DNA of 63,893 bases, counting the filler, from Choristocarpus tenellus KU-1152 (taxonomy: Eukaryota > Protista > Phaeophyceae), in NCBI GenBank assembly GCA_964200185.2. It is 10 parts of 10 records of this genome, joined end to end, with 100 filler letters (N's around TTAATTAATTAA, not from the genome) between each part and the next. Parts side by side here need not be neighbours in the genome. Positions count along the whole stretch, not along the records: positions 31,270 to 51,477 come from CAXNAD020000413.1; 9 more parts are not named here. The stretch is one strand, 5' to 3'. Positions 747-50,988 of this stretch are shown piece after piece (the stretch's first letter is position 1; every line of letters begins with the position of its first letter). A model generated the notes under the pieces. The model was given only the letters and a program-made list of their open reading frames with translations, made no database searches and was not told where the DNA came from. Position numbers and translations under genes: made by a program.

Positions 747-1968
747 GTATGTCATATAGTTGGGTAGTCTTACCACGTTTCAAAAATGTACAACAAAAAA
801 ACGAAACAAGCGGCAAATTAGAGGATCTTGGCACAAAACAACAACAACAGACCATCCTATTCTCAATTTCTTCAAGGGCATTATGGTACGAGGCAGGCCT
901 TTGGATCACCACACCAAGTTGTCACTCAACCTCAAGATTCATACGCTCAAGGTTGAAGTACGTGTGTGCCCTTTACAGGATTGTATGACAAGGACAACTC
1001 ATGAGGAACACAATGAGTCCATAAAACCTGTTTTCACCGCCAGAAACTCCTATGGCATTGCATTGGATTGGACTGCAACCGAGAATACTGATCACATCCT
1101 GTCTGCTAAGCCATCCAATTAATTCAAAAGCAAATGAGGTCACACAAACATGATCCCTACTACCTGTTGACTACTTTCCTCACTGTTTTCTTGGGTTTTC
1201 TTTCGTCTTGTTTGTGGTATGCAAAGAGTGTTGATTGAATGGATGAAACAGATTCGTCTCTGAGTTTCGTTTTTCATGGGATCGTGTGTCATTGATTGCA
1301 TAAAATAATGTCCCGCTCTCTGCTGGGTACTAGCATGTAGTGTCTACGTCTTGACTGGTTTCCTCTTTCTGATGCTGATCTCGTTATTAATGCTTTATTT
1401 TTATTTTTTGCCTTTTATTTCACTTCTCTGTGAGCTGCAATTCACTACATGTCTGGTACCTCCAAGACTAAAGTTTAACATATTGATAACGTAATGATTA
1501 CCTGAAGAACAATATAGAAAGAATAGATAGCATATAAAATATGGTAGATGCTAGTAGTAATCCAGCAATAGACACACAAAAATGCTCCTCACTTTCTGGT
1601 TGTACCCAAGTCCCTTGGACACCAGTTTCTTGGCCAAGCTATCAGCATGAGGATTGCTTGCAACAAATACAGGTACCCTCTGAAACATTCCATGGGGAAC
1701 AAAATCGAGAATTGGGGGTGGGGTTGCACAGATGAGGAGGCTAGTCCAGATATCTCAACACCCCTCTGGGGGATGGAGTAGGAAGAGGAATGGGTAAAAG
1801 CTCATTTCCCATCAACCTGGCATCTTCTTTACAACACTTCAGCATGAGTACTTGTAAATAAGCTTATTTTCCAACCAATGTACCCTTAGAAAATCCAATA
1901 ACTTGTCAAAGAAACGCAAAAATATACAAGATCCTATCAACAACACATTCAAGGATTGCCCAAACTCA

Positions 1969-2226
1969 GACCCAAAGCGTTTAAGAGGGTAGGAATTTTG
2001 CCCTGTTTGTCTGTTTGGGGCTTGTCTTCCCACGGTTTTTCTTTGCCCTTTCTTGGTTTTCTAAATATTTCGGAGTAGGTAAAACGTATACAACTATGAA
2101 AGGTGTGTCCAGAGCAAGGATAATGACTCTTGCTAACAAACATGATAGCCAAAATAACATCAAAATCTCAGTATTAGATTTTTGAACCCAAACAGATGCG
2201 TTCCTACCCTCCTAATGCTTTGACTC
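1969..2226. mobile_element. MITE family B, full copy
   Basis: Termini GACCCAAAGCGTTTAAGAGGGTAG...CTACCCTCCTAATGCTTTGACTC; TSD TCA/TCA; collinear with 499-746. Confidence 0.9.
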
Positions 2227-3483
2227 TCATCTGACCAAAAAAAAAAGTCAGCAGACACGTCAAAAATGGGTCTGTGTCAGTAATCCTCCGTGCAATGGAT
2301 GTTTCTGTGGTATGCAAAATGTTTCAAATGTGCTGTAAAAGGCAACAGCTATCATTACCAGGGACTGCACTCACCCGATCAAACAATATGCCCAGGATAT
2401 TCATTCCAGTAATATGCATATGCCTTGCCCTGGAACCGCCACTATCGACTCTGTAGAAGCAAGATGGAACAGCAGGAATCAATAGATAGCAGTAAGGGCA
2501 TTGAAGAGGGATGGTGAAGCTTAGAGAAATATATTAACTACCGAGGAATGATAAGAACGGCAGAGACAAGCAGGCGAGACCAGTTTAAGATAAGGCATTC
2601 TTGACAACAAAACTGAAAAGGCTCCTGGAGGTCAAGAGGATGGGGGTGGAGTAATAGATCACCAAGATCGTGCAAAAATGTATCACTGCAACAAATAGAG
2701 TGAAAGTGTGGGGAAAGGTAAGTAAGAAGGAAGGGAGGATAGGGGGGGTATGGACCACAGGACGGATTAGATCTTACCAAAGAGTGCAACGATATCTCAG
2801 CCTGTGTAAATTTCTCTCCTAAAGATCTAAGGGGGGTGTGCATAGGTTTACAGAAGATGATACCGCGAGTGAAAGGGTGATATGGGCATAAAATATCACA
2901 GTAGTGTCACTTTGGAGATTACCTTCACAGGTGGTCTGGGAGGGGTGCTTTGACTGTACAGAAAATAGACACATACATACACACGATGCCCTCAACTCAC
3001 TCAAACACCTCACCTCGCATGAGCACCCCCTGTGTAACCCTCCTGTGCTTCCAGCAGGTTGACAATGTTGCTCATTTCCAGAGACAGTCGATTTGGTTGT
3101 CCTTCACCTAATTTTGTGTGGTGCCCACAGTTGGAAGTGATTGAGGAGGAATGCAGGGGTCACAACATGATCTCATTTACTAAAAAAAATTGTGAGCCAA
3201 CAAACAAAGGAGAAAACATACAATAGAGCATGATAGATAGATATTTCGCCCATTGTAGCTATAGTCTAGCAAGGTGTTCTAGTGTGCCCCAGCTAACTCA
3301 CTAACGCACCAGTAGGGCTAGCAAGTCAAGCTCTTTGGTATTCAATAAGGTGCAACATATACCCCAAGAACGGAAATATCAGTCAAGGTATGACATTCAA
3401 AAACCACAATTTTCTTGCCTCACATACCCCAATCCTTCATGTTCCCCCTACCCACCGAGATGGGTCAAAGTATCTGAGGGGTG

Positions 3484-3583
3484 NNNNNNNNNNNNNNNNN
3501 NNNNNNNNNNNNNNNNNNNNNNNNNNNTTAATTAATTAANNNNNNNNNNNNNNNNNNNNNNNNNNNNNNNNNNNNNNNNNNNN
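3484..3583. other. Artificial contig spacer N44-TTAATTAATTAA-N44; also at 8999-9098, 19093-19192, 22118-22217, 26137-26236, 31170-31269, 51478-51577, 56500-56599 and 60918-61017
   Basis: Nine identical 100-nt spacers. TTAATTAATTAA puts stops in all six frames. Confidence 0.98.
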
Positions 3584-5831
3584 GTCACCTATTGGTGTAG
3601 CCGTACCATGTGCTTCGATATAATCGATGTCTTCAATAGTAAGGTTTGCATTCTTACATATTCTCATTATTTGGAACTCACTAGCCAATCACTTCTTGAA
3701 GGGGGATGCAAAGACCAAAAAATTGTGTTGTTCTGTAGCACCTTCTATGAGAGTAGGGAGGAATAGGAAGCATGTTGTTGAACATCTTGATTACTGTGAT
3801 CGCTCATCACGGGTTCAAACCTCCCGCAAACCCCAGCAAAGAAAATAAAATAGTTATTAGAGTTTAGGAGTATTATTGAACACTTGACTGAAAACAGACA
3901 ACCTTCAGTCCATCAAGTTGTACGCGACATGATCTCTTGTTTCCGATTTCTCCTGACTTACATGAAAGAAGGAATACCAAATCTTTTCCTCGAACACACT
4001 TTCACTAAAAATTGACGTACACAAAAGGGGGTGTAAGGTTCGTATTCACGAATTTTGACTGAACTCCCCCACTATACCTCCAACCTAACTTCTGTTGTAC
4101 TTACGATACCAGGTTTTCGTTAGTTTTTATCCTGGCACATCTACCAAAGGTTAAGAGGGCATAATGTATATATTATGTTGTTAATAATGATGGCATTACA
4201 CGAAATTTCAATCCTTCACCCTGTCTAGTAGGAATATACTTAGACGGGATTCGACTCATATCGGAAGCATGTTGTAGGATCGCGTTGTAATGCCAAAAAA
4301 AAGTTTGTTGAAGAGTATGTGTATCAATGGACGAATCTCGTAACACAAGTAAGTGTGCAAATGCAGAGAACTCTTACTTGTAACTATAACAAGAATATAC
4401 ACTAAGTAGGAGTATACTACATTTGAAATTCAAGTATGGTACTACTCTTACTATATAATAACAATATAGAGTTAATGACCGATGGGGGAAGTGAGTACAA
4501 CATTATAATAGTTCAATACAAAATCGCAAACAACCATTGCCAACAGGACTTTCTTCTTGGTTGTCTCACACAACTCGGGTTGTAACATTTTTTGACCGTC
4601 CTGATGGTCTGCCTTTTAGGTAGTTCGCAACAGAAGTCAACCTCTATAGTTTCACTTCACTCCATCGGCAAAAGAATAAAAATGAAAACGGTACCTCAAC
4701 CAATCTCAACACAACGAGCTAAAGAGGGACCAAGAATTGTGCAAAGGAACTAACTCTCCCCCTCTCCTCCTGTTGTCTCTTTCATCATAGAAGGTCCATA
4801 TTGATCCGCATGACAAGCAAAAGCAGGACTTACAAAACGAAGCGGCAGATGCAAGCTAAGTAAACAATGTATTCTAGCACATACCACCACAATTTCCTAG
4901 ATAGAAAAGGACACAACAAATGCAGTCAGACAAGCAGAGGACAACTCGACTGAACTAATGATGTATGATACACAGGTTTTCCCCAACTCCTTGCCATGGA
5001 ACAACTCTCGTATTTTCAGCTTTCTCAATCCGTCACCCTTCACTCCCTTCTACGTACCATTTCACTGTATCTCTTTCAGAAAAAATACTAATATGTTTAT
5101 GTATGCATGACCATTTGCTTTCTCAAGAAACGCCTGTTCCACACCCTGGGCATCGATCTTCTTCCTGCCTCCACTGGCAGCTTCAGCTGCCCAACACACC
5201 ACTCCATTTCTACTGCCTCCTATGCATCGATCCTCTCACCACACCTTGGAAACACAAGGCCAGCAAAAACCCTCGACCTACTCTCAAAATAACTCCTAGA
5301 GCCAGGCATTCTTTGCTAAGAACAATGTCTGGGGGGAGGGGACTCACTCCAGGAATCACGTACCTATGGGCAAGCCAAACAGAGTCAAAGGAGACCCAGT
5401 ACAGAAGCGGTATATCACCACCTCTCTGCACCCCACCCCAAATTCCCTACCTCCAAATTGCTTCTATCCCCTGTGATTTGACCCATCCCCACCCACACCT
5501 TGAAACAACACATCGACGACAACATCGGGGCCCACAAGCACAAAATTAGTACAAACTCAATTATCAACTATCAGACCCGACTCCATCCCCGAACCAAGGG
5601 TCCTCCAGCAGACTAGAGCCTCACTTGACAAGAAGAGCAGGAGAGGCCAGCACTACATGGACTAACACACACAATCACCAACCCATACAAAAAAACTCCA
5701 ATTGCATGATCATCAGATGCGCCACCCCCCCCCCTCCTCTACTTTTTTTTTCTTCTCAATATCTAGCATGGGACACTTCGTTCTCTGTTTTCCCGCCCCC
5801 ATTTTCTTGTAGGGTAAGAAGAAACCGGCCC

Positions 5832-31661: not shown

Positions 31662-31842
31662 GGCTCAAAGTATCTGGGGGGGGGGATGGCGACTGTCCAT
31701 TTGGGGTCAAGTTTTCATGTCGTGATTTTTGGGTGATTTACTTGCATTCGTCTGATGGATAATGTAAATACACTTTTCCTGATTTTGGTCCAAAATGGGC
31801 ACCCTGGTGTAGACTCCCCCCTCCCCGCAGATACTTTGGGTC
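31662..31842. mobile_element. MITE family A, full copy
   Basis: GGCTCAAAGTATCTGGGGG...CAGATACTTTGGGTC; flanks TTA/TCA. Confidence 0.9.
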
Positions 31843-31951
31843 TCAATAGCACAGTAGCCATGTAGTTCACCAATTGCTTCATCACTTTCTTTCCTGCTTC
31901 TTGGCCCATGCCATCTATTCGAATGCTCCCTTGTCTTCTGGAATTTCTCAC

Positions 31952-33687
31952 CTGTCATGAAGTTCTACTTGTAGCATGGTAGTCTCCACCCACTCTTCCA
32001 CCCAGTGCCTGTCCATTTGCCCCAATAGAAAGGCAGATGTGTGCCTGAACGATGCACTCTTGCTGTGCACCTGTCCTCCAGTCCACAGTACTCGGGAGTG
32101 AAGCCCCCCCCCCCTGCCTCCTGCCCTATCACCATCCTCAAGATCTTCTCTGATACATTTGTCTCCTGCTGCTGCTACCGTGTTCCCATAGAATGGACGG
32201 CATACAACATAGACTGGCTTGCAATGACGCTGGAGCAAGGAGAATGGAGTTGGTTTCACATTCTTTTGCATGCTAGGTGATGAAACCCTTACCCCTGGAA
32301 GCCCTGTCACAGCTCTAATAGAAATGGCGAGGGGGTTGAGCTCCTGTAAAATCCCTTGGGAAAACAGAGGCCTCTGACCCTGTCTGCCTTCACCCATATC
32401 TGTACCTTTGGTCACCTCAGGCGAACTGAAGATATCTCCTGTCGCGGGTACAGGCGCTCCCCTACTACTTCCTCTACTACTTCCTCTACTACTTCCTCTG
32501 TTCTCTGATAGAGAAACAGAGATGCGAAGGTATCGAAACCCGATTGGGGGAGGAGGTGCTCCCGTGAAGGGGTTGGTTCTGAGATGTTTTTCTGCTGGCA
32601 AACTACTTGCCCTGGCAAGGTCTTCGTCATTGATCCCCAAGTTGCCAAGTGTAATTGTCACATCCTCTTCACCGGCGAGAAATGCGCTGAGGTCAAGGGA
32701 CCATGAAGCAATAAAATTTCGACCTGGTGGACCGGATGCACCAGTAGTAGAAAATGTTGCTGCTTGTACAGGGGTCACTCCATCACCAAGATTCCTCCCT
32801 GGACCCGGGGACTGGGCTGTAGCATCGCATTCCGATCGGTCGGCCAGGGTAAAAGATATCAAGGGACTGCGGTCGAGATTAAGAGCCACCTGTAGCAAGG
32901 GTCAAAACTTCACACTTACTCTTCTGATAGCTTCGTGCGTAGGGAGATGTTGGGAGTAGGAGTTTGGGACTAGGAGCTGGGGGAGAAAGATACTGGGTAG
33001 GGGGTGAAATCATGGAGTGATGGTTTGGCCATCTCAACTCTGACCACATACTTGTATGCATAGCCTTGGCTGGGGTGTTATTTTTGTCTCCACTCGCTCG
33101 AAAGCAACCTGTAGGACGACTGAGGTGTCATGTTTGTCTGGAACAGTGATGCCGAGAGGTGATAGGCGAAAGAATTCTTCCCAGCGCTTCAGGTGGGAGC
33201 ACCGCTGAAATCGATTCAGTCCAACTCCTTCTCTCACCTCTTTTTCTCCCCCTCCCTTCAGCTGATGTCTCCTCCTGTAGCACCATACCACTGTTTTCAA
33301 TACCCCCATATCTGCATCTTCCTCTACGTTTTCCTCGCCTGTTCCCTTTTCCTCATCCGCTGCTTTTCTCGCATTCTCCAAGCCCTTGATATCCCTCCTT
33401 TCCCAGGATGTCCCGTTCATACCCACGACAGGAGTGGTGATCCGGTCCCCATTTACGAACGTGTACCTGATCGTTGGCTCCACCAGGAGTGGCCGTACCT
33501 CACCTTCAACCGCATTCCCTTCATCTGATTCGCCCTTTGTCAACGGGGCATCATCTATCAGGCAGGCCTCTATTCCAACAACCAGGCAAAAGGGGGCATT
33601 GGCGGCAGGTTCGGGGGGTTCACTCGAAGTCTTTTCCACAGCATCCGCCTTGCTGTCCTTGGCTTTCTTTTCCTTCTTGGGTGGCAT
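31952..33687 (-). CDS. CFAP92/KIAA1257 (DUF4550)-like flagellar protein, first two exons (3' part not seen)
   Basis: Exon 1 33687-33238 (MPPKKEKKAK..GGGEKE|GTGAGA, phase 0). Exon 2 32889-31952 (ctacag|VALNLDRSP..HDR, AG|GTGAG). Motifs LDLSAFLAG, QELNPLAISIRAVTGLP, LQRHCKPVY, FRHTSAFLLG, LQVELHDR match my recollection of CFAP92 (KKLNPLTI..LERLCMPVY..VVEVHDRD). Confidence 0.7.
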
Positions 33688-34348: not shown

Positions 34349-37300
34349 ATGCCGAGTGCGGAGAAAGAGGGAAGTCATCACCCCTGGAATGGTAGAGAAA
34401 CACCCGACCAGGCAAACCCAGATTCTACCGGGGCATGTTCAGGAGAGGGGAATGGAGAGCGGATCGAACATCAAGAAATAAATGGGGTACCTGATACTGG
34501 GCATGCCCCCCACACTGAAAATGCAATGGCTGGAGACATGTGGGATGTTCAGAGTCAAACGGAGGACAGTGGACGGCACACCGAGTCGAGTGGAATGCGA
34601 GATACAGGGGTGAAGGTGGAGATCCCAAAGTTTCAGGTGCATGTTGAAGGTGAGATGCAAGTGAACATCGAAGGAGAGAGGCCACCCCCTCATGGGACTT
34701 CTCATTGTAAGTGCAAAGATATCTTGTTGTAGGGAGGTGAGGTTTATTGCTACATGTAACTCAAGGCGACGGAGGTGTGCGTGCGTTGGGGTTCGTTTAT
34801 GAGATCTAGCCTTTTCTTTGTGAGAGATCTATTGCATGGCCTGATCGCTCATAAGCAGGTGGAAATTATTCAAGGAGTTGCGATATGATGGCATATGAAG
34901 TTGGAATAATGGCGGGCAAGAATGGTTGGAGGATCCACCTCTATATTTTTTTCGCTGGTACAATTTTGTTTTGCTATCAAGTAGTTGACGCTCATCCACC
35001 GCCACTCCCTTTCCCATCTCATATCCTCTCCTCATGTAGTTGGTTGGTGGGGAGAATGCCTGAAGGTGGTATGACTGCCCCAAACTGATCGCTTGGTTGG
35101 TCTTGCGATACAGGTAGTGTGCACAGTCCTGAACTAGACACAACATCAGTGGAGATATTGCTATGGCATATTGATCAGGACAGCCCTACTCACCCATATC
35201 AAATATCTCATAACCCCAAAACAACTTTCGCCTAGGTAATGCATTGCCGCGGTTGAAGACTGATTTACGACAGTACACAATGAAGATGTAACCTCCGACC
35301 CCTTTATATGCTTTCAGTGTCAATGGATCCAGGAAAGGGCAGTGCTTTGGAAGGCAACTCACAATTGTCAGATCCTCAAGATTTGCAGATGGACCCAGCA
35401 GCACTCATTGCAGCAGCTTCAACGCCTATGCCAGGAGATGAACTCAAGAATGTTCAACCCCCCCCTTCCCCAACACTCCCAGCGCCTCTGCCAGAGGATC
35501 TGCATGTAGGCACTAATCCCCGAGTAGCTTTCCGCAGTCAAAGTATTTGGGACAGGCTGGCTCGACCACGGGTCTCACGTGCCCCACCTGAGATAATGGA
35601 GCGCTTAAGGCAGAAAATTGTGGAGAATGCCTGCGGGATAGTGAATCCTCACACAAAACACCGTGGTGGTACCCATGTAATCTACCCTGGGAGACCGCCA
35701 CTTACGCAGGGGGGTGGCAGGGGCAGAGGGATTGGCCCTCGTGATGCTCACTACCGCCAAGACCTCGCTCCAAATGGTGCTGCTGCTGTCACTGCAAGAC
35801 TGCGATTTGTGGCTGCACGTAAAGTAGCAGTCCATGGTTCCCGCCGATGTAGCAGTCCCACCTTCCCAGGTGCAGGCAAGCGGTCAAAGTCTGTTCCAGG
35901 GGGCCGAGAAGGGCGTGGAGCTGGTCGGATGGGAAGAGGTTACTCTTGCACTCGCAAGGGTTCCCTGGTAGGTCGAGGCGGAAGTGTGTTAACCAACAGG
36001 GCCATACGTGAGCCGACAGGCAGGGGCAGTGGTGGTGCAACAGGTGGTGCTGATGATGGGGCAGGTGAAGAGGGTGAAAATGTCATGAATATACTTGCAG
36101 ATGTTGTTTCATCAGTTGAAGACCATGTGATCAGGGCCACTGCAAGTCTTGATCTTATAAATGGCATAATGGCGACCTCCTCTGGTGAAGCCTTGAGTAT
36201 GCCTCATCCGTCCGCAAATTTTGTGGCACAGAGGATTCATCAAGCAGTGTCACCTGCAGAGGCACCTCCACAAGCCAGTCTCTCCACTGATGCGGAAGCT
36301 CATGAGAAAACCCTTGAGTCTGTGATTGGACTTACTCACCCTAATACCATGAGCTCAGCAAATCCATCTGGAGTAGCCTCCATTATCTCCGCTGGCACCT
36401 CTGCTACAGTGGTGTCCAGAGAGGACCCAGATGTGGACTCGGTGGTGGTGCCTGTGCAGGTAGTAGACTCTAACATGGCAGTGGTAGCATCAAGTGCTGA
36501 AGTATCAACAGCAGGAGACTGTATGATAAGGGCTCCAGTGCAAGGACCTGAAGGATCCATGGGTGTTATTGGGTTGACCACACCTCATGCACATGAGGCA
36601 CCAACATTAAATCCTATCGTGTCAGCAGGTCAAAGGCTGCAGGAAATAGGGGCTGAGGTGGTGGCATCTACCAGACAGGGTGAAGAAGCGTACTTGGAAG
36701 CTCAGGTAGGGTTGAAGAGTGGCCAAACCAGGGTATCTGTAAGGGATCAATGGGAAGAGGTGTCGCCAAGGGACCAGGTTTGTGAAGGTAGATTGCCTGT
36801 CAACCAGGTGCCAGGTGATAGGATAATGGAGGCAGGGGCTGCTGTGATAGAAGGCGCATCTGCAGGATCCTTGCTTTTTGAACGTACAAATGTGTCTGTT
36901 GTTCCTGGCGTGGATGATGTGGTAGGTGAGGTTCAACCTCAGAGGGAATTGGAGTCACATGTAGAAGTGGGGCGGAGACAAGATGTGACCCTTGCTCAGA
37001 CCCCTTCCTGTACTCAGGAAGAGCATGCCACTGATGAAGCAGTTGGAACTGAATCAGGGGTGCAGTCTGGGGTACAAGTTGAGGGGGTGGTTGAGGTTGA
37101 ACCTACAGATTCCACCATTATTGAGTCTGGGACCCAGGCAGATGTTGAAGATGGGAATGGGGTTGGACTGGGGGTACAATCTGGGACCGGCTCTCAGTCC
37201 AGTGGGCACAGCAGGATGGATTCAAATATGGTAAGACTTTCGTTAGTGACAGAGGAGCCATCACAAGTTGCCAGAGACACCAGGGAGAGTTTAGCACAAA

Positions 37301-39450
37301 GTGTCCCTGTGACTGGGCTCAATGAGAATGAGAGGATATCTGATGCCAGATCTAGGCTTAATAGTCTTCGGACAAGACTTGCATCGCGGAGGATCCCTGA
37401 GACTAGAACAAGAGTAAGAGCAGCTGATATTGAATCAAATCTTGAGAGACTCGGGATGAGATTTGACAGGATTAGTGCAAGAACAGCAGCTTTAATGGCA
37501 GATGATGATCCAGGCCCTGCTCCTATTGGATCTGAGACGAGGCGTGCAAGGAGGGCGGCTAGGATAAGTATGACTGGTGGTACCAACCCTGTGGTTCAGT
37601 CTGGTAGTGCAGAATCTGCGGTTTTGCCTGCCAGGACCACATCAGAGGCTGTACCCTCCATGAGTAGCAATGCTTTGGCTAGGGTTGCAGCAGGAACTGA
37701 TGCAAGCCATTCTCAGCAACAACGCACCTCAAGGAGATCTGTGACAACGAGACAGGAATCTGCGGCACAGAACAACAATGTGAATCATAGGGCACCAAGG
37801 AGGAGATCTATAACAACTGTGTTAGGGAGGTGCAGCATGCAGGGAAGGGAATCCACTGGTTCTTCTACAAGTGGTTCTACTCATATCAGGACCAGCGGAA
37901 TTCATGGCGGGTTGGGTGGCAGGGGTGGTGGTGAGGGTGGTGGTGAAGTTGGTGGGAGTTTGGAAGGTGAAGGCGAGCAGGAAAGAGCCAATCCATCCTT
38001 TCCATTAATGCCTTCTCAATTGCCTTTACCTCCTCCACCTTCACTTACTCAGACAGTTTCACCTCCACTTCCCACATCTCAGGCGGGTTTGATTCTTTCC
38101 CCCCTTGTGGGAAGTGATGCCAGGGTTGAAACTGAAACTGGGCAAGCACACACAACCATCACTGCGGGGCTACATAGTGCGATCAACAGCATAGAAGCGG
38201 AGCGGGAACGCCTGCTCCGTGAAATTGTGCGACTCCGCAACCAACAGGCGGAATCATTGCAGCAGTTGATTGCCCTGCAGCGTGAGCAGGTCCGAGTACG
38301 GCAACGCCAGACACATACCTTGTCCAACATTCTTGAGGGTCTTGTACGAACTGTTGCATCAATGGAATCTCTACCGGAGGCTGCACTTAACCACCTAACC
38401 ACTGCCAATCTGAGCACACATCGTCGACTTCTGCTGCTCGTGTCTACCCTGCACTTTCCCCCAGTGGAAGACCACGCAGAGACTGGGGGAGAGGCAGGCG
38501 CCACCACCTCTTCATTGATTGAAAACAGTGCTTCCTCATCACGCCCCCGAGAGTTGGAGGAGCTTGAGAGGGGAGTTGTGTCTGCTATAGTTTCCTCTAG
38601 TGACCTCCTTAACAGTGTTGCACCTAGTACATCCTCCACAGCGCCCAGTGGTGCTTCCTTCCCGGGCAGTGATACGTATTCATTTGCGAATGCCTTTCAT
38701 GCTCTTTCCGGTCAGTCTCTTGACAGTACCATTAGGTATCTCATCGAGGCTCGAGAATCGACTCGTTTATCAGATGGTGGGAACGAGGATATCTTCTCGC
38801 TGACTGAGCAGCGCCATTATGCCACCAGCAGTGTGTTGGGTGAAGGGGGCACCGTGTTGACTGATCAGCAGTGGGTGGACTTCCTGCTGGCAGATGCTCA
38901 AGTAACACGCAGTGAGGACGTCCAACGAAGGCGGGATGATATTCGAAGATTTGCTCAGAGGACAGTTGCTAATGAAGCTGCTGTCGCTGCAGCTCTTGCT
39001 TCATTCCAGGACGGTATTGATGGTGCTGGAGGAGCATCCTCACGCTCAGGGGGCTGCAGTATGGCAACTATTGCATCACTTCGCCGGGCTACTTACCAGC
39101 CTGGTACTGCAGGTGGTTCTGTTGACAGCACCCATGAGTGTGTGATATGCCTCTCAGAGTTTGCTGTTGGAGACATGCTGTGCTACCTGCCCTGCTCCCA
39201 TGTTTTCCACCAGAGCTGTGTGGGAACATGGCTGGCAAACCACAGGTCATGCCCTACATGTCGTAGTAGGATCCCGGATGTAGGTTCAAGGACCCGGGTC
39301 AGGGGGCGGGGGGTGACCGATAGTGGGCGTGGGACTAGGATTAGGGCCAACATAAGAGGGACTCGTGGATCAAGAGCAGGACCAGTGGTAGCCACTGGAT
39401 CTGAGGTGGGGAGTGAAGGTGCTGGTGCTGGTGCAGAAGCAAGTGTATGA
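34349..39450 (+). CDS. Large RING-H2 zinc-finger E3 ubiquitin ligase (~1500 aa, mostly disordered, coiled coil, C-terminal RING)
   Basis: Exon 1 34349-34706 (MPSAEKEG.., donor T|GTAAGT, phase 1) joins exon 2 35318-39450 (acceptor ctttcag|TG, phase 1), which lies inside the 1380-aa ORF. RING-H2: CVICLSEFAVGDMLCYLPCSHVFHQSCVGTWLANHRSCPTC. Coiled coil: IEAERERLLREIVRLRNQQAESLQQLIALQREQ. Confidence 0.9.
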
Positions 39451-42133: not shown

Positions 42134-45100
42134 CTATATACCGTTTTGGAATCTACCACAGCTCCCGTCACTGGCTGAATGAATACTGCCGACTATAGGT
42201 GGGTTTGAGGAGAAGAGAGCAGCCCCGTTTTGGCTGAACAAGTGAGCAATTGATGGGTGGACCCATTCAGAAGCTCTGTTGCTAGGAGAGTCAGCACTCT
42301 GCCCCTCAGTGGTTACCCTCTCAAGACCTGTCATCTTAAGTCCTGCTTGACCATCGGTGCAGGGTCACATGTGTTATGGAGGAAGGACACGCAACAAGGT
42401 GCCAGGTTATCAGAAAATGGAAATCGGTCACAATGTACATTTGATCACACTCGAATGCTTAGAATAGTTTAGGCGTTTTGGGAGATTGGGACAACTCTCT
42501 GCTCTCCAGAGGCACAATCTGTACGTGAAACAATTTATAGGGCAACCAACATTAAAGAACGATCCCTTACACATTTTTCGATTAATCTCGCCTTTCTTTT
42601 TGTCAACTTTCCTGTGCAAGATTTGTGAATTCCTCCTTGATGTGAAAGCTTATCTTTTATTTTCATAGCCAGCCGAATAATTGAGACAGGTACAAGGTTG
42701 AGCATGCATCGTTTCCCACATCACTCTTTCCACCGTGTACCCCATACCTGGGTCATGCTTGTTGAGGAAGGATTGTAAATACAAGTAGGATCGCAGTGCA
42801 GCATTGCGAAGGCCCTCTGGTACACCTTCTTCTTGTCTTTCCTGAGTGGGATTGGGCGTGGGGAGGGTTGAGAAAGAGAAGGGGGAAAGGGTGGATATAG
42901 TTAAGGGGCATAAAAGAAGAATTAGGGATAGGGTTAGGGTTAGGGTTAGGTTTGGGGTTAGAAGTGATGCTGAGAGAAATATCAGTAAGATTTTGGGGTA
43001 GGGAAGGTTGCAGAATGAACTCATCCAATGGCTCAACGTGAGAAGTAGTATATTCCATTGGTTCAAGTCAATCTTGAAAGATCGATGCAGTCTCCAAGGT
43101 AGATCAGGTACTGGATATTGAATCAGATGTCTTGGCCAGCCTGATCTCGACCCTAGATTGGCGTATTGTTGACTGGATTGAATGTTGGATAAATAATTCT
43201 TGATGATGCTCAACCCAATATCCCACCTCTTTATTGGTCTTGCTGGGGCTGTGGGGATGCAAGGTGCACACTGCTGAATGGCGATTGAACGCACAGTACA
43301 CAGTACTACAACAGAGGGGTGAAGATAGCATCAACGATGTCATTGGTGGGAGGAACATGTTGAGAAAGCCAGTAACTGTGAGGATGCTGACAAATATATA
43401 CAAAATTCGCCCTTTTGCTTCCAAATTTGTGTATGATACAGTATTTTCTTATTATGTCGGAAATGTTTCAAACCATAGAGAAAAAAACACTCTCAAGTCA
43501 ATCTTGGAGCATTACTCATAGAAGTATGGGTGAATTGCAGAAGATTGAAAACTGGCTCATAATGAAAAACGTCCACAAACTGGGTACCTCTCATTTACTT
43601 TGGCTCAGGAAGTTCATAAAAATTACACTACCGAAACAACAATTACATCAGGATCAGAGATCGGGAAGCCCATATGGTCTGCGCTGTATTTTGGCACTGG
43701 GATAGGGATAGGGATTGGGATCAGGAAAGGTAGTTAACTTTTGGGTGTGTGTTGGTTTGCACTTATAGTCCTTGCAATGTGGAACACTGCTGAAAAAAAT
43801 GCTGCTCTTGGCATCGTGCCACCTAACCCTAGAATCTTGTTGATATTTAAAATTAATAATATTGTTAGTATTGTTATCCTTTTCATTGGCACTACCCTGT
43901 AGTCTGGGATTAGATATGCAGAGGGTGGGGGAGGTGAATGGGCAGAAGTGATGCGGTGGAGGGTAGTGACATACTTCAGCCAATGGTTCTGCATGGTCTG
44001 GGTACCATCAGGAGGGAGGGAAGAGTCGTAGGGTGGTGTATGCACAGCGGGAGGAGGAACACATGATAATATTATGATTCAATTGGTGGTCTATTGTTGT
44101 CTCGAGGTTGGTGTTAGGTTTAGGGTCAGGGTTAGGGTACAACATTCTGTACATTCCTATGTAGCACTACTGTAGGAATCTCGGGACTTGTAGATGCAGC
44201 AAAAAAAAAACACCTTGCTCCATCTTTGTACTCTCACTGGTGCCCTGATCTCCTTCCCTCATCTCCCCCTCTCAAGCATGAAAATATCACAAGCAAGAGA
44301 TCATGTTACCTGCAGAAATCGAACCTCTATGGCACATAGCAAGCGCCAAAACAGTATGGACCACATAGTACACGTACACGAAACTCTCCAACAAATCCTG
44401 GTAAGTCATGCACACAGATGCAAGGTACCCATCTGCCCACCTTTTTGTGGATGGTCATAAAGAAGGTGTTGACCGGGCCGCTAATTTCGCTTGCAATACT
44501 TTCTTCGATTCCATCATAGACGAGGTTAACCACCTTCTCCTGCCACCCTCCCTCCTCGCCTGCAGGTGCCGGAGGAGTGGGGAGGTCCGGCATCTCGCCC
44601 TCATCTACAGCTGCAGTGACAATGACGCAGCCAAACTTTAGGGCACATCCCAATTTTGTCGCCCAATCATATGGGAGTGTCAACCGATACCCTTGACCAT
44701 CCTTGCCGGACCTGGCATTTATTTAGGGCACATGAATTATTGAGGACAACAGCTTGATGGTCGTAGAAAGTACAGCATTCTGATCGGAAATCAGAACAAT
44801 TGCTCCACATCCTATGTTGTCGGTCAAGAGTCAACTGTTGTGGAGGTAAAGCGTGGAGGGAGGAGTAGAGTGGAAATGGTTATGGATGTTCTCAATCTGG
44901 AGGCAGGTACTGTCCATTTCTTATTAGGATTAAGGGGCTAAACTATTATAGCAAAGTGCTCTTATTTCAGGAGGGGGGGTGGGGGTCAATCTCTTTTGCA
45001 ATTGTGTATTGGTTGAGGACAATTCTATAGCAGCTGTTTTGTGAACTATCCTGAGTATCATATACCAAAATATCACTGGCAGAAGCAGAACATATATCCT

Positions 45101-48100
45101 GTAGTTTCTCTGCTCAACATCAGTTTGAATATTTATTTGTCTCCATCCATGCAAACTATCCAAGTTGATGCTGAAAAGAGGAAGAAAAAAATAGGAGTAC
45201 TCTCTGGAGCAACCAACCATGTTGTGATACTGTAATTAATGAAGAAATGACATCAAAGCGCTTGGATAACAATATGAGATGCTGAGAAGGTGGCTGAAGC
45301 ACTCATATCCAACATAGAAAGTTTGAAAATATGGAAATGAATCTGTATCTGAGGTAAAAACAAACGACCCATAGCACTTAAACGTGTAGGAGCTTTGCTC
45401 TGTTTGTCGGTTCGGGGCTTGGCTTCTGTTTTATACCTTTTTCGATTTTCTGTGTGAAAATTTCGGATTTCAGAGTAGGTAGAATGTGTATGGCAATGAA
45501 TGGTGTGTCCGGAGCAAGGATTTTGACACTTTTCTAACAAACACAATAGCCAAAATTAATCCAAATCGCAAAATTGGATTTATTACCCTGAACGGACGCG
45601 GCCCTACCCTCTTAAAGGCTTTGGCTCAACACAGTAGAGACATCAAAATGTATCCAGTGTTGAACACCATCACGCTGACGACAGGAACAGAGTTTAGAAT
45701 GCATACTGCGTATCACTTCATCATTCCACCAGTCCTTCAAGTCTACATCTTCCTCACTCAACACCACTAGGAGTCTTTGTGTCACTCTATCTCCTCCATC
45801 ACCTCCACCTTTTGTCTGCAGCCGTGATGTGACATCTGCCACACCCTGAGGCTTCTATCCTCAGGGATACTCCTACCCCAGTGTTACCCAGGATCCTATA
45901 CAATTTCTCCCCTGTAACCTGCCTCAATGTTTCTCACTCAACTTAGTTTTCACTGTATCAGCACATTAAGCAAAGAGGGTAACAACTTAAGCGCATTGGC
46001 ACAAGGTGGACTGTTGTTGCCCATCTCCCCCAAAGTTTACCTTGCTACCAACCCCTTTTTCAATACCCCTCTCTTGCAAGAACCCTGTCTTCATTTTATG
46101 ACACTCAACCTCCTAAGTAACTCACTTGGCAGGTATCATGGTGATGGGACACACAAAATTCAGTCTCACTGGCTTCTTTAACCACTCGTCTGTGGTATCT
46201 AGAGGGGGTGGGTTTCTCTTGTATGGTGGGGTATCTGGGGTGATCCACACAAGGCGGGGGCAATCCACTATCTCTGCATCATCTACCTGTTTGTTGGGGG
46301 GAGGGGGGAGTCCAAAGGGTGGTTTGTAGAACGGTTCATTGGTGTGCTGTGTGTAATACTCTAGATCTCACGGTGATGGCCATAAAAACTCAGCCTAATC
46401 TATTGTTTTTTCATCAATGTCAGCATCTTCAAGGTCATCCTCTGGAGCACCATCCTTTGTATCTCCTCCTGGAGGGCACTATTGAGCAGGGGCAGAAGTC
46501 AACACAGGAGGATGTAACTTGGAGTATTCACGAAGGGCATGGCCTTTGCGAGTCGTGTATAATGGGATTATAATGTCTACATGTACAGGGGAAAATAATG
46601 TAACAAGACCTTTTGTGAATTGACACACAGGAGAGTGCATTAATGATATACTCCTGAGAACAAGGGTACCGGCATCTACCAAATGCCCCCCACATGGGGG
46701 GTAAGGATAGTGCATTCATGGTGCTGTCACCATGAATATGGATGCACACCTAGCCATATACAGTATGCAAGATACTGCAAAGAGCAGATTCGAGGGGCAT
46801 GGAATTCATGGTTACGACAACACCAAGAACTTAACTAAACTACATTGAAATACTAGTAACAAGTTACACAGAAAAAAGCTACCACCACTCTACAGAAGCA
46901 ACTACTCCACTCACGATGTCTCTGAGTTGCTGTATGTATCCTCTTGTTGCCATCACTGCAGGACTTGACAGCAATTTCGCAGCTCCACTTCCTTCTGAGG
47001 GGCTATTGGACCGGCCATCTTCCTTATGTCCACCTTTGCCAGGAGGAGGGCTCCAGGGGGGGGTGTTTGTACCTCGGCTTGTCATCTGAACTGGCCTCAA
47101 GGCTGAGATTTTTGTAGTGGAGTTGACGTATTGGAACAGTGTAAGAGAGCTGTGTGAGTGCAAGGTGTCAAAGTGAGGAATAAGGTATAGTGTTGTTAGC
47201 TAGCCCAAACCTTTAAGGTAGAGGGGGACATGGAGCCAAACATGTTGATAGATGAATTACCTCGAAAAAATATTGCGTGTCTTACTTCGTAGGTCTCCTA
47301 GATTTATTGCACTACTACAATTGCAGAGTGTACTTCTGACACTATGGGGTGTACATGGTGGTGCCAAGATAAGGGTTAGGATTACCTTTTCAATGTGGGA
47401 AAACCATAGAGTTGTGCCGAACAGCGTACACCTCGCCTGATGCGCACACCAAACAATCACGTACAAGCAAATAAATAGACAAATGGACACATGCTGCGGT
47501 AGACACATTCACTCATGTAATCAAAACTCTCTCTTGCATGCACAACAACAAAATGAAACTTTGATTGGGAGGTCTCACATAAGAAAGTATCATGAAAACG
47601 CAGTGAGAACACTAGACCCTGAGCAGGGCATATTGAAGTGGCAGTGATCTCCGGCTCCCAGTAGATGCCCCTGACAGCCAAGGACCCCAACTTTGCCAAT
47701 GAGGCGGCATATTTTAATTCACGTCTAACAGAGGAGCTTTTCTGAGGAAAAATTATGGTTGTGTTTGTGAAACATAAAACAGAAATGACCGTGGGGGGGG
47801 CGGGTCATGGCATCTCTGTGGTGAACATTGATATGTTTCTTATGCTCACTTTTATGTCATAAAGTTGATATAGCTGATTACTTATGATATAGTCAGAAAA
47901 GGGGGTGTTAGTTCTTGCGGCAACAGGCAAGTTATAAATTCGACTTCAAGGTCATGGCTTGTAGTAGAAGTAGTGCTGAAGAAACTGATTGCAAAATCAG
48001 TGGAAGGCGGAAGGTAGGGGGGAATGAGGGAGAGTAACATATTCGACCCTCGCCTGAGCAGCAATGGACCAACACAGTTGAAACATGGAGGCCTCCCTTA

Positions 48101-50988
48101 TCAAGTCTGAAGTGCGCCCCTCATCGCCAGGTACTCTTGTGTAGGCGTTGGTGATGCCTAGGCCATTGATGCAATCGATGGTTGGCTTGAACAGGTACTC
48201 CTCCTGGGCTGCATAGCTCAAGAACACTGACTCGACAGCCTTGGATATTTTAAACAGAGGAGGTAGTAAGTGAGTGGACATGTTCATAAGAGTATGAAAC
48301 CTGATGTTGCAAACAGGTGAGCTCAAGGTGGAGCAATTGGAGGCACAGTTTTTGATGTCCACGGCTTCCATTTAACCAATATAATAACCTTGACTGGAAT
48401 ATGAATGGAATGATATGAAGGATTTTTCTGCTTGACCCTTTCTTGATATCTTACCTGCACCACTGGGCCCAGAACAATGGTCTTCGATGAACTGTCTTGC
48501 TGAGATGACACTACCTCCATCTCCACCTGTGCCTGCGCTAGCAGGAGAGGTCCGATATAGAAATCGATAACACCCCTTATCTTGCCTGAGCTGATGGTGT
48601 GAGGTGTCCGTACCTCGAGGGGCAAGCAATGAAAATCCTTCATCCACTTGACCGTTGCCTGCACGGGGTTAACACAGCAAGCCTTTGTCGTGTGATAGGA
48701 GGACAGGAAAGACGCGAAGAAGGGTGTGTTGGAGTGTCTGTCAGCGAGGATATAGGGATGGTTGAGAACCTTACAGTGTAGGACTCCAGTCCCAGATAGA
48801 TATACATACGACAATATACAGCTCTCTTTACTCATTTTTTACTTTCGAAGACCCTGGGTGAGAGCTGGCTAGTGAGGTTAGAGAGTCATGAAGGCCATAA
48901 ATTTTTCTGATTGGTTTGCAAACTAGTGACTTCTGAATAACACAAGGAGGACGGAGTAGGAGGCAGTAAGCCTCAGCGGACAACTTTCCTGAGGGGTAGA
49001 GCTATATCGTGCTGCCATTTGGCATAGGATGATAAAGGATTGGGCCAAAGCATTTAGAGGGTAGGGCCGCGTCTGTTCAGGATCATAAATCCAATGTTGC
49101 GATTTTGATTCATTTTTGCAATGGTGTTTGTTAGCAAGTGTCCATATCCTTGCTCCAGACACACCTCTCATAGTCGTATAAATTTTATGTAACTGTGTGT
49201 TCATACAGAAAACCGATATAAAACACTGGTGGGAAGTCAAGCCCTGAACAGACATACAGGGCAAAACTCCTACGATCTTAAATGCTTTGGTCCATTGTGC
49301 CAAAGCATATTCACCGGATACTTGTCTGGGTAAAGTCATAAATCAGTACTGCACAGGTGATTTTGGAAGATTATCTTAAAATAGGGTACCAGACACTCTA
49401 ACTGAAGAGGGTGTGAAATATTATTACCTAGATAGGCCAGCCATTTCTGTCAAATTACTCTAAATGGCAGGGACTCGAGGGCGTAGCAGAACAAAGATAC
49501 ATTACAAGATGGTGTAGATACAACCAAGGAATGGCATCGAGGTGAAGGTTTCTTTTCAGGTTGGATCAAATCTAACTCTAACCCCCACACTAACTTCGAA
49601 GGTTTGTCACACCTTGGGGAAGCACGGGCGGATAACCACCTCAGTTCCTGGAGGTATAGCTCTATCGCCGTCCTCAACCATGTCCTTGTGGATGTAGGAC
49701 ATACCATTCACACTCGCATCATGCGCTCTGTGAACAGCCTTGCCTACTGCCGGCTCGAACATGTAGGCATTGATGTTGTTCCACTGGTAGTGCCATATGA
49801 ACCGTTGCATGATGCAGAGGTTGTAGATATAGGATCAGACGTGTGCACTGTGCTTGAGGGTATAGTGAAACATACAGACCAAGTGTGTGCTTGTGTTGCT
49901 TGACTGTAAAATAGGCAGCTGTTGCCCTCCCAAACCTTTCCTTGACACCAACAGATTGAGTGCTCCAAAAGCTGCTCTGTCAGGAAATAACGTTATTCTT
50001 GCCTATGCACTATGTATCATGATTCTTATTCTAGAGGGTCAGAAAGAGAGAATGTGGAACACCACACCAATCAGCCCCTAAACTGTAACAAGAGACGCAA
50101 AGTATCTGGGGGGGGGGAGGGTCTATGCCAGGGGTGTCCATTTGGGTCCAAATCAGGAAAAGTGCATCTACATTATCCATCGGACATATGCAACCAAATC
50201 ACACAAAAATTGCAACATGAAAAAATTGACCCCAAATGGACAGCCGCCACCCCCCCCCTCCAGATACTTTTAGCCAGACCGTACAAGAAACATTGGTGTA
50301 TTCCTCGAGATACATAAAAAAAGGACTGTAGAAGCCGAGCCCCGAACGGACAAACAGGGCAAAACTCCCACACTCTTAAATGCTTAGGACCCAAAGTTTC
50401 TGGGGGGGGGGGGGGGATCTACACCAGGGTGTCCATTTGAACCAAAATCAGGAAAAGTGTGTTTACATTATCCATCAGACGTATGCAACCAAATCGCCCA
50501 AAACTCGCGACATGAAAAAAATTGACCCCAAATGGGGAGCCACCACTTCCCCCCCCCCCAGATACTTTGAGCCTTTGGGTCAAGGCTGAATGACGTAGTA
50601 ACATTTCCGCCACTACATTCATACAAACGATCCCTTCTCAAGTCCAAGTACCCTTTGCTGTGCTGGTCCTATCCCCTGCGACATCCCCTCCTTTCACATG
50701 TATTTCCCCTTGCAGTACAATGAATAGGAAATTTGCTGTGCTGGTCCTATCCCCTGCGACATCCCCTCCTTTTTCATGTATCACCCATTCCAGTATGATG
50801 AATGGAACATACCTGCTCGCCAGCCTTGATGCTGCAGGGATATGCTACCCTGAAGCAGGCCCTGGGGCTCATCTCACAACCAGAAGGCTCCACAGCTGAT
50901 TCTGACCTTGATGGTGGTGCTGATCCAGGCGAGTGACTGCGGTGTCGGTTGCTGCGAGGACTGGAAGTTCCATTGCGTGAACGTTCCC
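42134..50988 (-). CDS. Multi-exon gene (5' incomplete): low-complexity linker + beta-sandwich domain + TIR (Toll/IL-1R, TIR_2-like) domain + ROCO/TORNADO1-type C-terminal domain; ~600 aa visible
   Basis: Phase-consistent exons (minus): 50988-50813 (..ACFRVAYPCSIKAGEQ), 49783-49613 (WNNINAYMF..IPPGTEVVIRPCFPK), 48682-48455 (ACCVNPVQATVKWMKDFHC..GVIDFYIGPLLLAQ..GPVVQ), 48239-48054 (AVESVFLSYAAQE..IREASMFQLCWSIAAQ; GC donor), 47741-~47579 (KSSSVRRELKYA..VRGIYWEP..), ~47090-46915, 46286-46126 (VDCPRLVWITP..EWLKKPVRLNFVCPITMIPAK), 44711-44441 (SGKDGQGYRLTLPYDWATKLGCALKFG..), 42841-42748 (..ALRSYLYLQSFLNKHDP), 42342-42134 (GLKMTGLERVT..EWVHPSIAHLFSQNG..). The 47579/47090 junction and the final stop are the least certain boundaries. 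Confidence 0.8.
45366..45627. mobile_element. MITE family B, full copy (intronic)
   Basis: GACCCATAGCACTTAAACG...CTACCCTCTTAAAGGCTTTGGCTC; TSD AAC/AAC. Confidence 0.85.
49042..49293. mobile_element. MITE family B, full copy (intronic, opposite orientation)
   Basis: GGGCCAAAGCATTTAGAGGGTAG...CTTAAATGCTTTGGTCC; TSD ATT/ATT. Confidence 0.85.
50094..50275. mobile_element. MITE family A, full copy (intronic)
   Basis: GACGCAAAGTATCTGGGG...CAGATACTTTTAGCC; TSD AGA/AGA. Confidence 0.9.
50388..50573. mobile_element. MITE family A inserted into the terminal repeat of a partial family B copy (~50325-50581)
   Basis: The B end CTCTTAAATGC-TTTG-GGTC is split as TGC TTAG [A copy] TTTG GGTC. Confidence 0.85.

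Follow-up and report, generated by a model that had tools for sequence, protein, structure and literature searches.

The stretch of DNA analysed here (the window; 63,893 nucleotides, filler included) was joined from ten records of the brown alga Choristocarpus tenellus KU-1152 (GCA_964200185.2), and the analysis covers its part 31270-51477, which comes from CAXNAD020000413.1. On the minus strand of this part lie ten exons, between 50988 and 42134, which account for the last two-thirds (3' side) of a gene conserved in brown algae. The gene encodes ankyrin repeats, a divergent domain for which structure prediction supports a TIR fold, and an unannotated C-terminal domain of about 230 residues. 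By analogy with TIR proteins of known function, we lean towards regarding the product as a repeat-regulated, SARM1-like TIR signalling enzyme.

A split gene conserved in brown algae

A first-pass annotation of this DNA had proposed one hidden gene of ten exons and about 600 residues, and its motifs lie, in six-frame listings, on the minus strand, spread over about 9 kb. They do belong to one gene. The ten exons follow one another from 50988 to 42134 in consistent phases and with no internal stop, and they total 1847 nucleotides (2 nucleotides plus 615 codons, ending in TAG at 42136-42134). All ten acceptors are AG; by our count the donors are GT in nine exons and GC in E_d. Exon borders were set from junction sequences, with homologues as guides. 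The exons are given below, with E values from local tblastn searches of the window with three brown-algal proteins as queries.

50988-50813, minus strand: exon E_a, 176 nucleotides; Ser/Arg-rich linker and start of the beta-rich region (..ACFRVAYPCSIKAGEQ)
49783-49613, minus strand: exon E_b, 171 nucleotides, phase 0/0; beta-rich, possibly immunoglobulin (Ig)-like region, WNNINAYMFEP..DRAIPPGTEVVIRPCFPK
48682-48455, minus strand: exon E_c, 228 nucleotides; remainder of the beta-rich region, ACCVNPVQATVKWMKD..VDFYIGP..VLGPVVQ; tblastn E 1e-18; donor CAG/gtaaga
48239-48054, minus strand: exon E_d, 186 nucleotides; predicted first half of the TIR domain (betaA-alphaA-betaB-alphaB-betaC), AVESVFLSYAAQEE..DLIREASMFQLCWSIAAQ; tblastn E 2e-9
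47741-47579, minus strand: exon E_e, 163 nucleotides; predicted second half of the TIR domain, with alphaC carrying the conserved Glu (SVRRELKYA) and betaD (RGIYW); tblastn E 1e-17
47102-46915, minus strand: exon E_f, 188 nucleotides; low-complexity linker, then a helix ..AVMATRGYIQQLRDI leading into the C-terminal domain
46286-46126, minus strand: exon E_g, 161 nucleotides; C-terminal domain part 1, VDDAEIVDCPRLVWITPD..DEWLKKPVRLNFVCPITMIPA; tblastn E 5e-12 to 6e-14
44711-44441, minus strand: exon E_h, 271 nucleotides; C-terminal domain part 2, with SGKDGQGYRLTLPYDW, a hydrophobic helix ATKLGCALKFGCVIVTAAV, a Pro-rich loop and a helix VVNLVYDGIEESIA..; tblastn E 1e-15
42841-42748, minus strand: exon E_i, 94 nucleotides; C-terminal domain part 3, ERQEEGVPEGLRNAALRSYLYLQSFLNKHDP; canonical splice sites, phase-consistent
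42342-42134, minus strand: exon E_j, 209 nucleotides; C-terminal domain part 4, (G)LKMTGLERVTTEGQ..ASEWVHPSIAHLFSQNG.., stop TAG 42136-42134; tblastn E 7e-10

The end points proposed in the first-pass annotation, the stop at 42134 and the E_a acceptor at 50988, were exact. Its outline of the exons was right overall, but E_d ends at a GC donor (CAG/gcgagg) at 48054, and E_e extends to 47579 and not to an earlier GT. A GT at 48048 was considered as the E_d donor and rejected, because the GC donor at 48054 is present in transcript-like data (see below) and is orthologous to the donor in Scytosiphon. E_e has a strong acceptor, atttttcctcag/, at 47741 and a donor TTAT/gtgaga at 47579. At the 5' side, E_a (acceptor ttgaag/GG, donor CAG/gtatgt) is entered in phase 1, and therefore the gene extends upstream of the piece. 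At the 3' side, the E_j acceptor was placed at 42342 because the LKMTGL motif lies within the tblastn match. The product of the window stops about 70 residues short of the ends of its orthologues, and a further 3' exon beyond E_j, undetected so far, is possible.

Searches were run exon by exon, and natural public orthologues stand in for the joined product of the window. Pfam searches of six raw open reading frame (ORF) pieces gave no match at E<=1. Four orthologues were found:

P0007, Hapterophycus canaliculatus, 749 residues, partial
P0016, Scytosiphon promiscuus, 895 residues
P0018, Ectocarpus sp. 12, 878 residues
P0017, EukProt entry, 880 residues

These proteins are 68-86% identical to one another over their whole length, and all four are on record as 'unnamed protein product' with ankyrin Pfam families only. 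Nine exons of the window are colinear in tblastn with orthologue residues ~205-823. The best match is that of E_c; E_a matches P0016 205-257 and P0018 206-256 (E 0.004), E_b matches P0018 258-322 (E 5e-12), and E_f matches weakly yet colinearly (E 0.01-0.17). The remaining exon, E_i, matches the ..KEAKQSFTNLRSLLQKYDKG of the orthologues only in a MAFFT alignment, and corresponds to the Scytosiphon exon of residues 749-781. Exon limits in Scytosiphon fall at the same residues (259-323, which are the limits of E_b, 323-401, 400-464, 465-527, 528-597, 647-749 and 749-781). In addition, a RING-finger gene adjoins the Scytosiphon gene tail to tail (L005 16918-21107), and the same layout is found in the window, where the neighbour is a single ORF:

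35308-39450, plus strand: RING-H2 ORF, single exon, 1380 residues, with a C-terminal zf-RING_2 match (E 9.5e-14)

This ORF has a colinear match to the RING neighbour in Scytosiphon; it is of low complexity and rich in Ser, Gly and Ala. From the shared exon limits and the RING synteny it follows that the gene in the window is the positional orthologue, from a more distant brown alga or close relative. One protein per public proteome or genome was found in all four cases, and the gene is apparently single-copy; among Ectocarpales, identity is 70-89%.

Architecture and the region before the TIR domain

In the orthologues, the order of parts is ankyrin repeats, an acidic and Ser-rich linker, a beta-rich region, the divergent TIR domain, another linker and the C-terminal domain of ~230 residues. 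The ankyrin repeats occupy orthologue residues ~1-140, and they are absent from the piece because it holds only 490 nucleotides upstream of E_a; the first-pass annotation had indeed expected the N-terminus upstream, probably beyond the gap. From the 3' end of E_a to E_c runs a conserved beta-rich stretch, FRVAYP..YxFEP..IPPGT..VxWMKD..FEVR..VDFYxG. A first AlphaFold model of this stretch together with the TIR domain, made from an alignment of 8 rows, was poor, with a predicted local distance difference test score (pLDDT) of 47 overall and of 55-69 over the beta-rich stretch. Foldseek matches to the beta-rich part of this poor model were Ig-like sandwiches of the PapD/MSP type, which gives a hint, and only a hint, of an Ig-like region.

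A divergent TIR domain

The single exons of the window gave no match to hidden Markov models (HMMs) of the TIR family, and phmmer with the first TIR exon against PDB sequences gave none either. Among the orthologues, TIR_2 is the only recurrent Pfam match, present in all four at ~16-20 bits (E 6.9e-4 to 0.013). Models of the ThsB type, including those of PADLOC and NCBIfam, match once each and weakly.

The fold was approached through structure prediction with the alignment enlarged by 25 exon-size fragments of other brown-algal assemblies. The AlphaFold2 model of residues 396-524 of P0016 has a pLDDT of 73, with 86-92 in most of the core, and its elements follow in the order bA-aA-bB-aB-bC-aC-bD. 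The top PDB matches of this model in Foldseek are TIR domains with probability 1.00, namely those of SPARTA TIR-APAZ, RPS4, RPPT, Cat1, MAL, MyD88 and RUN1. Superposition on RPS4 gives a root-mean-square deviation (rmsd) of 2.2-2.4 over 92-98 residues (2.2 over 92 columns in Foldseek). The highest structural Z, 11.1, was obtained with the TIR domain of Roq1, and RPPT, AbTir and SPARTA are also among the best PDB matches. The ten nearest ESM Atlas clusters are all bacterial or archaeal, with template modelling (TM) scores of 0.62-0.67; nine of them carry TIR_2 and the tenth is named TIR. Thus, three structure searches concur on a TIR fold, and the model superposes on solved TIR domains. The modelling therefore supports a TIR fold, in a domain whose predicted structure is nearest to prokaryotic TIR_2-type domains. 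The proposal of a TIR_2-like module had been made from a sequence pattern, with AlphaFold and Foldseek suggested as the check; that check, run on the Scytosiphon orthologue, predicts the fold, and together with the sub-threshold TIR_2 match in all four orthologues it bears the module out. 'Bacterial-type' is a fair label for it, given that the nearest ESM Atlas clusters are prokaryotic.

Plant and bacterial TIR domains have their catalytic Glu in an S-x-W-C-x-x-E-L region. Of 14 sequences of the brown-algal family, 13 have a Glu in the motif xVRxE[VL]KYA, which reads SVRRELKYA in the window; this Glu lies within the modelled alphaC. By motif spacing we take it to stand where the catalytic Glu would be expected, and it may be the equivalent of that residue in NADase TIRs. 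The main rival to the enzyme reading sees in the TIR domain a scaffold without enzyme activity, comparable to the adaptor TIRs of animals, which would serve homotypic or heterotypic assembly only; the ankyrin repeats and the C-terminal domain would recruit partners without any NAD+ chemistry. We hold this to be rather unlikely: almost every family member keeps the Glu at the catalytic position, prokaryotic TIR_2/ThsB-type domains make up the nearest structural clusters, and the best PDB matches (Roq1, RPPT, AbTir and SPARTA) are NADase TIRs. A prediction of the TIR homodimer scored 0.12, where the mark was 0.32, and this counts neither for nor against binding.

The C-terminal domain and its supposed relation to ROCO proteins

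The C-terminal domain begins with the helix that closes E_f and extends through E_j (~230 residues; orthologue residues ~585-830), and it is conserved in all orthologues. Its motifs there are VPRLVWIxPDD, DDWLKKxIRVxFLCPxSMKP, GxGYKMSxPRGW and KIGxALKIGVxVxAAASDAG, followed by GDLVNAAFD, SxxNLxSLLQKxDKGLKxTGL and TEWVHPSVAELF, and the window has equivalents of every one of them. No other 19-residue window of the protein is as hydrophobic as the helix encoded by E_h, which has a Kyte-Doolittle (KD) mean of 1.56-1.75, around the classical limit of 1.6, and a conserved Lys in its middle. As judged from hydropathy, this helix is a borderline, though possible, membrane span.

A phmmer search with E_h against 1.84 billion representatives gave 15 matches at E<=0.001: P0007 together with nine exon-size fragments of brown-algal type, P0014, and four spurious ones. 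The contigs of two of the fragments, P0001 and P0005, are too short to show their architecture. The spurious four (P0006, P0008, P0011 and P0012) were considered as relatives and rejected, as they are bacterial repeat/lectin-type proteins that match a Pro/Glu-rich loop.

P0014 is the sole relative found outside brown algae (phmmer E 3.7e-4; BLASTP 40% over the core FxCPxxxKP..GKGYxLxLPxxW). It is encoded on two environmental ENA contigs, L001 (69-2815) and L002. Upstream of it lie, in order, an ankyrin-like ORF, a divergent kinase-like region (DLKPAN by eye; C-lobe of Pkinase at a sub-threshold E of 0.003) and a coiled coil. The ORFs of these contigs fall in several frames, by small introns or frameshifts. 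On this thin evidence, with scores below threshold, the C-terminal domain may be portable, placed behind a TIR in one case and behind a kinase-like domain in the other.

The first-pass annotation had taken this domain, by its motifs, for the one that normally comes after Roc-COR in plant TORNADO1 and in the ROCO proteins of bacteria and brown algae. According to this explanation, it would couple the TIR domain to LRR-ROCO receptors, or act as a death effector at membranes. Such a role would fit the many LRR-ROC-COR genes of brown algae, which are candidate immune receptors (PMC11378527, PMC8307928), and it would also fit the hydrophobicity of the helix and the portable behaviour of the domain, as seen in P0014 behind a kinase-like region. 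However, no ROCO protein, nor any other protein with Roc or COR, was among the matches of the ~90-residue E_h query. The C-terminal halves gave only stray DUF matches against Pfam at E<=10, and the C-terminal profile gave only chance-level matches against PDB sequences. Neither E_g nor the C-terminal part of P0016, used as queries in ESM Atlas feature searches, led to a cluster or any usable lead. Pattern scans of prokaryotic genomes and JGI metagenomes (with A7 or P0014) gave no locus. The reach of these searches was short, with a query of ~90 residues and patterns taken from brown-algal sequences. Furthermore, the 111 brown-algal ROCO genes that have been surveyed are of the LRR-ROC-COR form with COR at the C-terminus, and their extra C-terminal domains are only peptidase or DUF900 (PMC11378527). 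The helix, with its conserved Lys, is itself borderline as a membrane span. We therefore consider this explanation very unlikely, while kinship of the domain with the post-COR region of ROCO and TORNADO1 is an unconfirmed proposal and not a refuted one. The first-pass annotation was correct in one related point, namely that there is no Roc-COR between the TIR and C-terminal domains: in Pfam searches, neither Roc nor COR matched P0007 (E<=0.1) or, with the limit at E<=10, the C-terminal halves of P0016, P0017 and P0018, and the precomputed Pfam records of the four orthologues, which are colinear with the window, contain ankyrin families only.

Transcript evidence and splicing

Sequencing runs were compared with 42250-48249 (6,000 letters). 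None of the runs whose recorded type is RNA contains the locus; a single study has three runs that do. Two of them (X1 and X2) look genomic, with even depth and no splice-like joints. The third (X3), a run of unrecorded type, behaves like a transcriptome and carries spliced contigs. Its record 23 (451 nucleotides) joins 48131..48054, 47670..47579, 47102..46915 and 46286..46194, and thus contains the E_d donor at 48054. The joints 47579/47102 and 46915/46286 are GT..AG (for the acceptor at 46286, cut +2) and are in frame (RGIYW..HDTFL / ..GYIQQLRDI / VDDAEIVDCPRLVW). The first joint, 47669->48053, has a microhomology of 5 nucleotides and, when shifted by +1, is a GC..AG intron. In Scytosiphon the donor orthologous to 48054 is GCTAAG/gttcgg, placed directly behind the equivalent codon, with GT there against GC here. 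A second X3 contig departs from the genome at 48241 and then carries the sequence of 48449-48466; the loose end and this match together give the junction 48455/48239, which is in frame.

Record 23 uses an acceptor in E_e other than that of the gene model:

47670..47671, minus strand: alternative 3' splice site (..gtcag/G), used by the sole assembled X3 transcript

With 47670 in place of 47741, the first 71 nucleotides of E_e, which encode alphaC with its conserved Glu (KSSSVRRELKYAASLAKLGSLAV), are lost, and the shifted frame meets a stop at 47592-47590. The X3 depth over 47671-47741 is 0. Thus, the sole assembled X3 isoform is unproductive, as seen in one contig of depth ~5 from one sample and a run of unrecorded type. 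The skipped segment is conserved in the orthologues (DRVRNEVKYAGSLAKTGSVAV), which makes 47741 a valid acceptor for the productive form.

These data raise the question of whether the gene is decaying or mostly silenced in this species, so that its weak donor, frame-shifting acceptor and antisense transcription leave little or no full-length protein. Besides the out-of-frame transcript with its stop, the end of the product, ~70 residues shorter than in the orthologues, would agree with decay, and the plus-strand GT..AG joints and the depth over 42250-45294 indicate that antisense RNA is more abundant than sense mRNA. However, all ten exons are open, their splice sites are intact at orthologous positions and the motifs are retained, which is unexpected for a pseudogene at this divergence, and assembled contigs such as the single one at hand drop rare isoforms. 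Decay of the gene is, in our judgement, most improbable.

The plus-strand joints in X3 are 42398/43264, with a microhomology of 8 nucleotides, and 43377/44566 (donor AACT/gtgagg, acceptor cctcctcgcctgcag/G). X3 depth is 8-13 over 42250-45294, and 0-5 over the sense exons further up. On the plus strand, 42398-44566 looks like a spliced antisense transcript over E_h to E_j, and its ORFs appear non-coding.

A possible mechanism and its relation to known systems

If the product is a SARM1-like enzyme, the N-terminal ankyrin repeats may bind a partner or ligand, respond to a signal or keep the enzyme autoinhibited. The putative Ig-like region, the C-terminal domain, or both could drive assembly or localisation, and self-association would gather the TIR domains, leading to NAD+ cleavage or to a nucleotide signal. 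The frame-shifting acceptor in the putative catalytic exon could serve as an off switch at the level of splicing, and unproductive splicing may thus control output. As judged from its sequence features, the C-terminal domain probably acts as a module of its own, in assembly, localisation or output, because it holds the sole strongly hydrophobic helix of the protein and occurs behind a kinase-like region on another contig, which is eukaryote-like. A role as immune or cell-death effector, as the first-pass annotation had it, is possible. Proposed algal immune receptor families are usually expanded and fast-evolving; since this gene is conserved, syntenic and apparently single-copy, it does not have the look of an expanded immune receptor family.

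Several points weigh against the enzyme reading. The TIR_2 scores stay below the gathering score of 28 bits, so that the curated threshold for a TIR HMM is not reached, and the TIR profile (A2) found no TIR among PDB sequences, only two chance-level non-TIR matches (E about 1.5). The confident model is that of the Scytosiphon orthologue and not of the spliced product of the window, which in the TIR alignments is 38% identical to P0016 over E_d and 61% over E_e (gap-free over the exon boundary); its final ~26 residues, the betaE/alphaE region, are unconfident. The putative catalytic Glu was placed by motif spacing and by the motifs of plant and bacterial TIRs, not by residue-level superposition, and the Trp of the bacterial WxxxE is replaced (R/S-V-R-x-E). 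The transcript evidence is a single low-depth contig of a run of unrecorded type. Lastly, the gene is conserved and seemingly single-copy, which speaks against a diversifying receptor of the classical kind and leaves a SARM1-like executor unaffected.

A bolder combination can be conceived. In it, signalling proteins of the stramenopile type would share a new portable domain for output or assembly, the C-terminal domain, which brown algae have joined to a TIR and another protist to a kinase-like domain. The ankyrin-TIR protein would be the active, NAD+-cleaving executor of a pathway of stress, immunity or cell death not yet described in brown algae, and alternative splicing of the catalytic helix would gate it. 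We regard this combination as decidedly unlikely.

SARM1 is an NADase of animals with the order ARM-SAM-SAM-TIR. The likeness of the brown-algal protein to it would be functional and architectural only: ARM and tandem SAM domains precede the TIR domain in SARM1, whereas by Pfam the brown-algal protein has ankyrin repeats and no ARM or SAM. It also adds the beta-rich region before the TIR domain and the ~230-residue domain after it, and no sequence homology to SARM1 is detectable outside the fold. Compared with prokaryotic TIR_2/ThsB-type proteins (Thoeris ThsB, SPARTA TIR-APAZ and AbTir), the gene here is eukaryotic and intron-rich, its Pfam scores are sub-threshold, the Trp of WxxxE is not conserved, and the flanking ankyrin, putative Ig-like and C-terminal parts are unlike those of the defence systems. 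The predicted domain resembles plant TIRs (Roq1, RPS4, RPP1, RUN1 and L6/L7) in the Z of 11.1 to Roq1 and in the fit to RPS4 given above, and the Glu presumably stands at the same distance from the end of betaC as in the plant TIR motif. In contrast to plant TNL and TIR-only proteins, it has no NB-ARC or LRR, sequence identity is 11-13%, and the plant-specific alphaD region is not confidently modelled. To ROCO proteins and TORNADO1 the only likeness is the resemblance of C-terminal motifs proposed in the first-pass annotation, whereas this gene and its orthologues have no Roc, COR or LRR, and searches with the C-terminal domain recovered no ROCO.

No description of this protein family was found in the published literature searched, in agreement with the first-pass annotation, to which the architecture was not known. 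For Ectocarpus, reviews on immunity in brown algae note a lack of clear orthologues of plant or animal receptors, and they name LRR-ROCO and NB-ARC-TPR families instead (PMC8307928, PMC11378527). What is new here is an annotation and an architectural variant, that is, TIR signalling proteins joined to an unannotated domain, in proteins that are already public but unnamed. As a kind of system it is familiar: fusions of TIR with repeat domains are widespread, and the ROCO link, which would be its most unusual element, is unconfirmed. The case does illustrate how a TIR domain can be missed by standard HMM thresholds in a conserved, syntenic gene that is publicly labelled by ankyrin repeats only. 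If the TIR domain is catalytically active, brown algae would gain a SARM1-like NAD+-consuming switch, and a further independent eukaryotic lineage would enter the account of TIR enzymes, with TIR paired to an unannotated domain. Ectocarpus is a genetic model, and the gene is directly testable there.

Repeats and other features of the piece

Contigs of the genomic runs reach a depth of about 1,000-3,700 at 43450-43649, 45450-45649 and 49053-49137, against 15-20 elsewhere, which marks these segments as dispersed intronic repeats; 45531-45615 and 49053-49137 are inverted copies of one element (87%). Another repeat family is common to the intron after E_a (50109-50531) and the far end of the piece (31712-31826), with 78-90% in inverted orientation, and two tandem units of 78 nucleotides lie at 50654-50809. 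The intron between E_h and E_i contains an interstitial telomere-like (CCCTAA)n tract on the minus strand (42914-42963), at which contigs break. Finally, two long ORFs without a Pfam match (316 residues, and 217 residues starting MPPKKEKKAKDSK..) lie at 31948-33687 on the minus strand, possibly as exons of a further gene at this edge of the piece.

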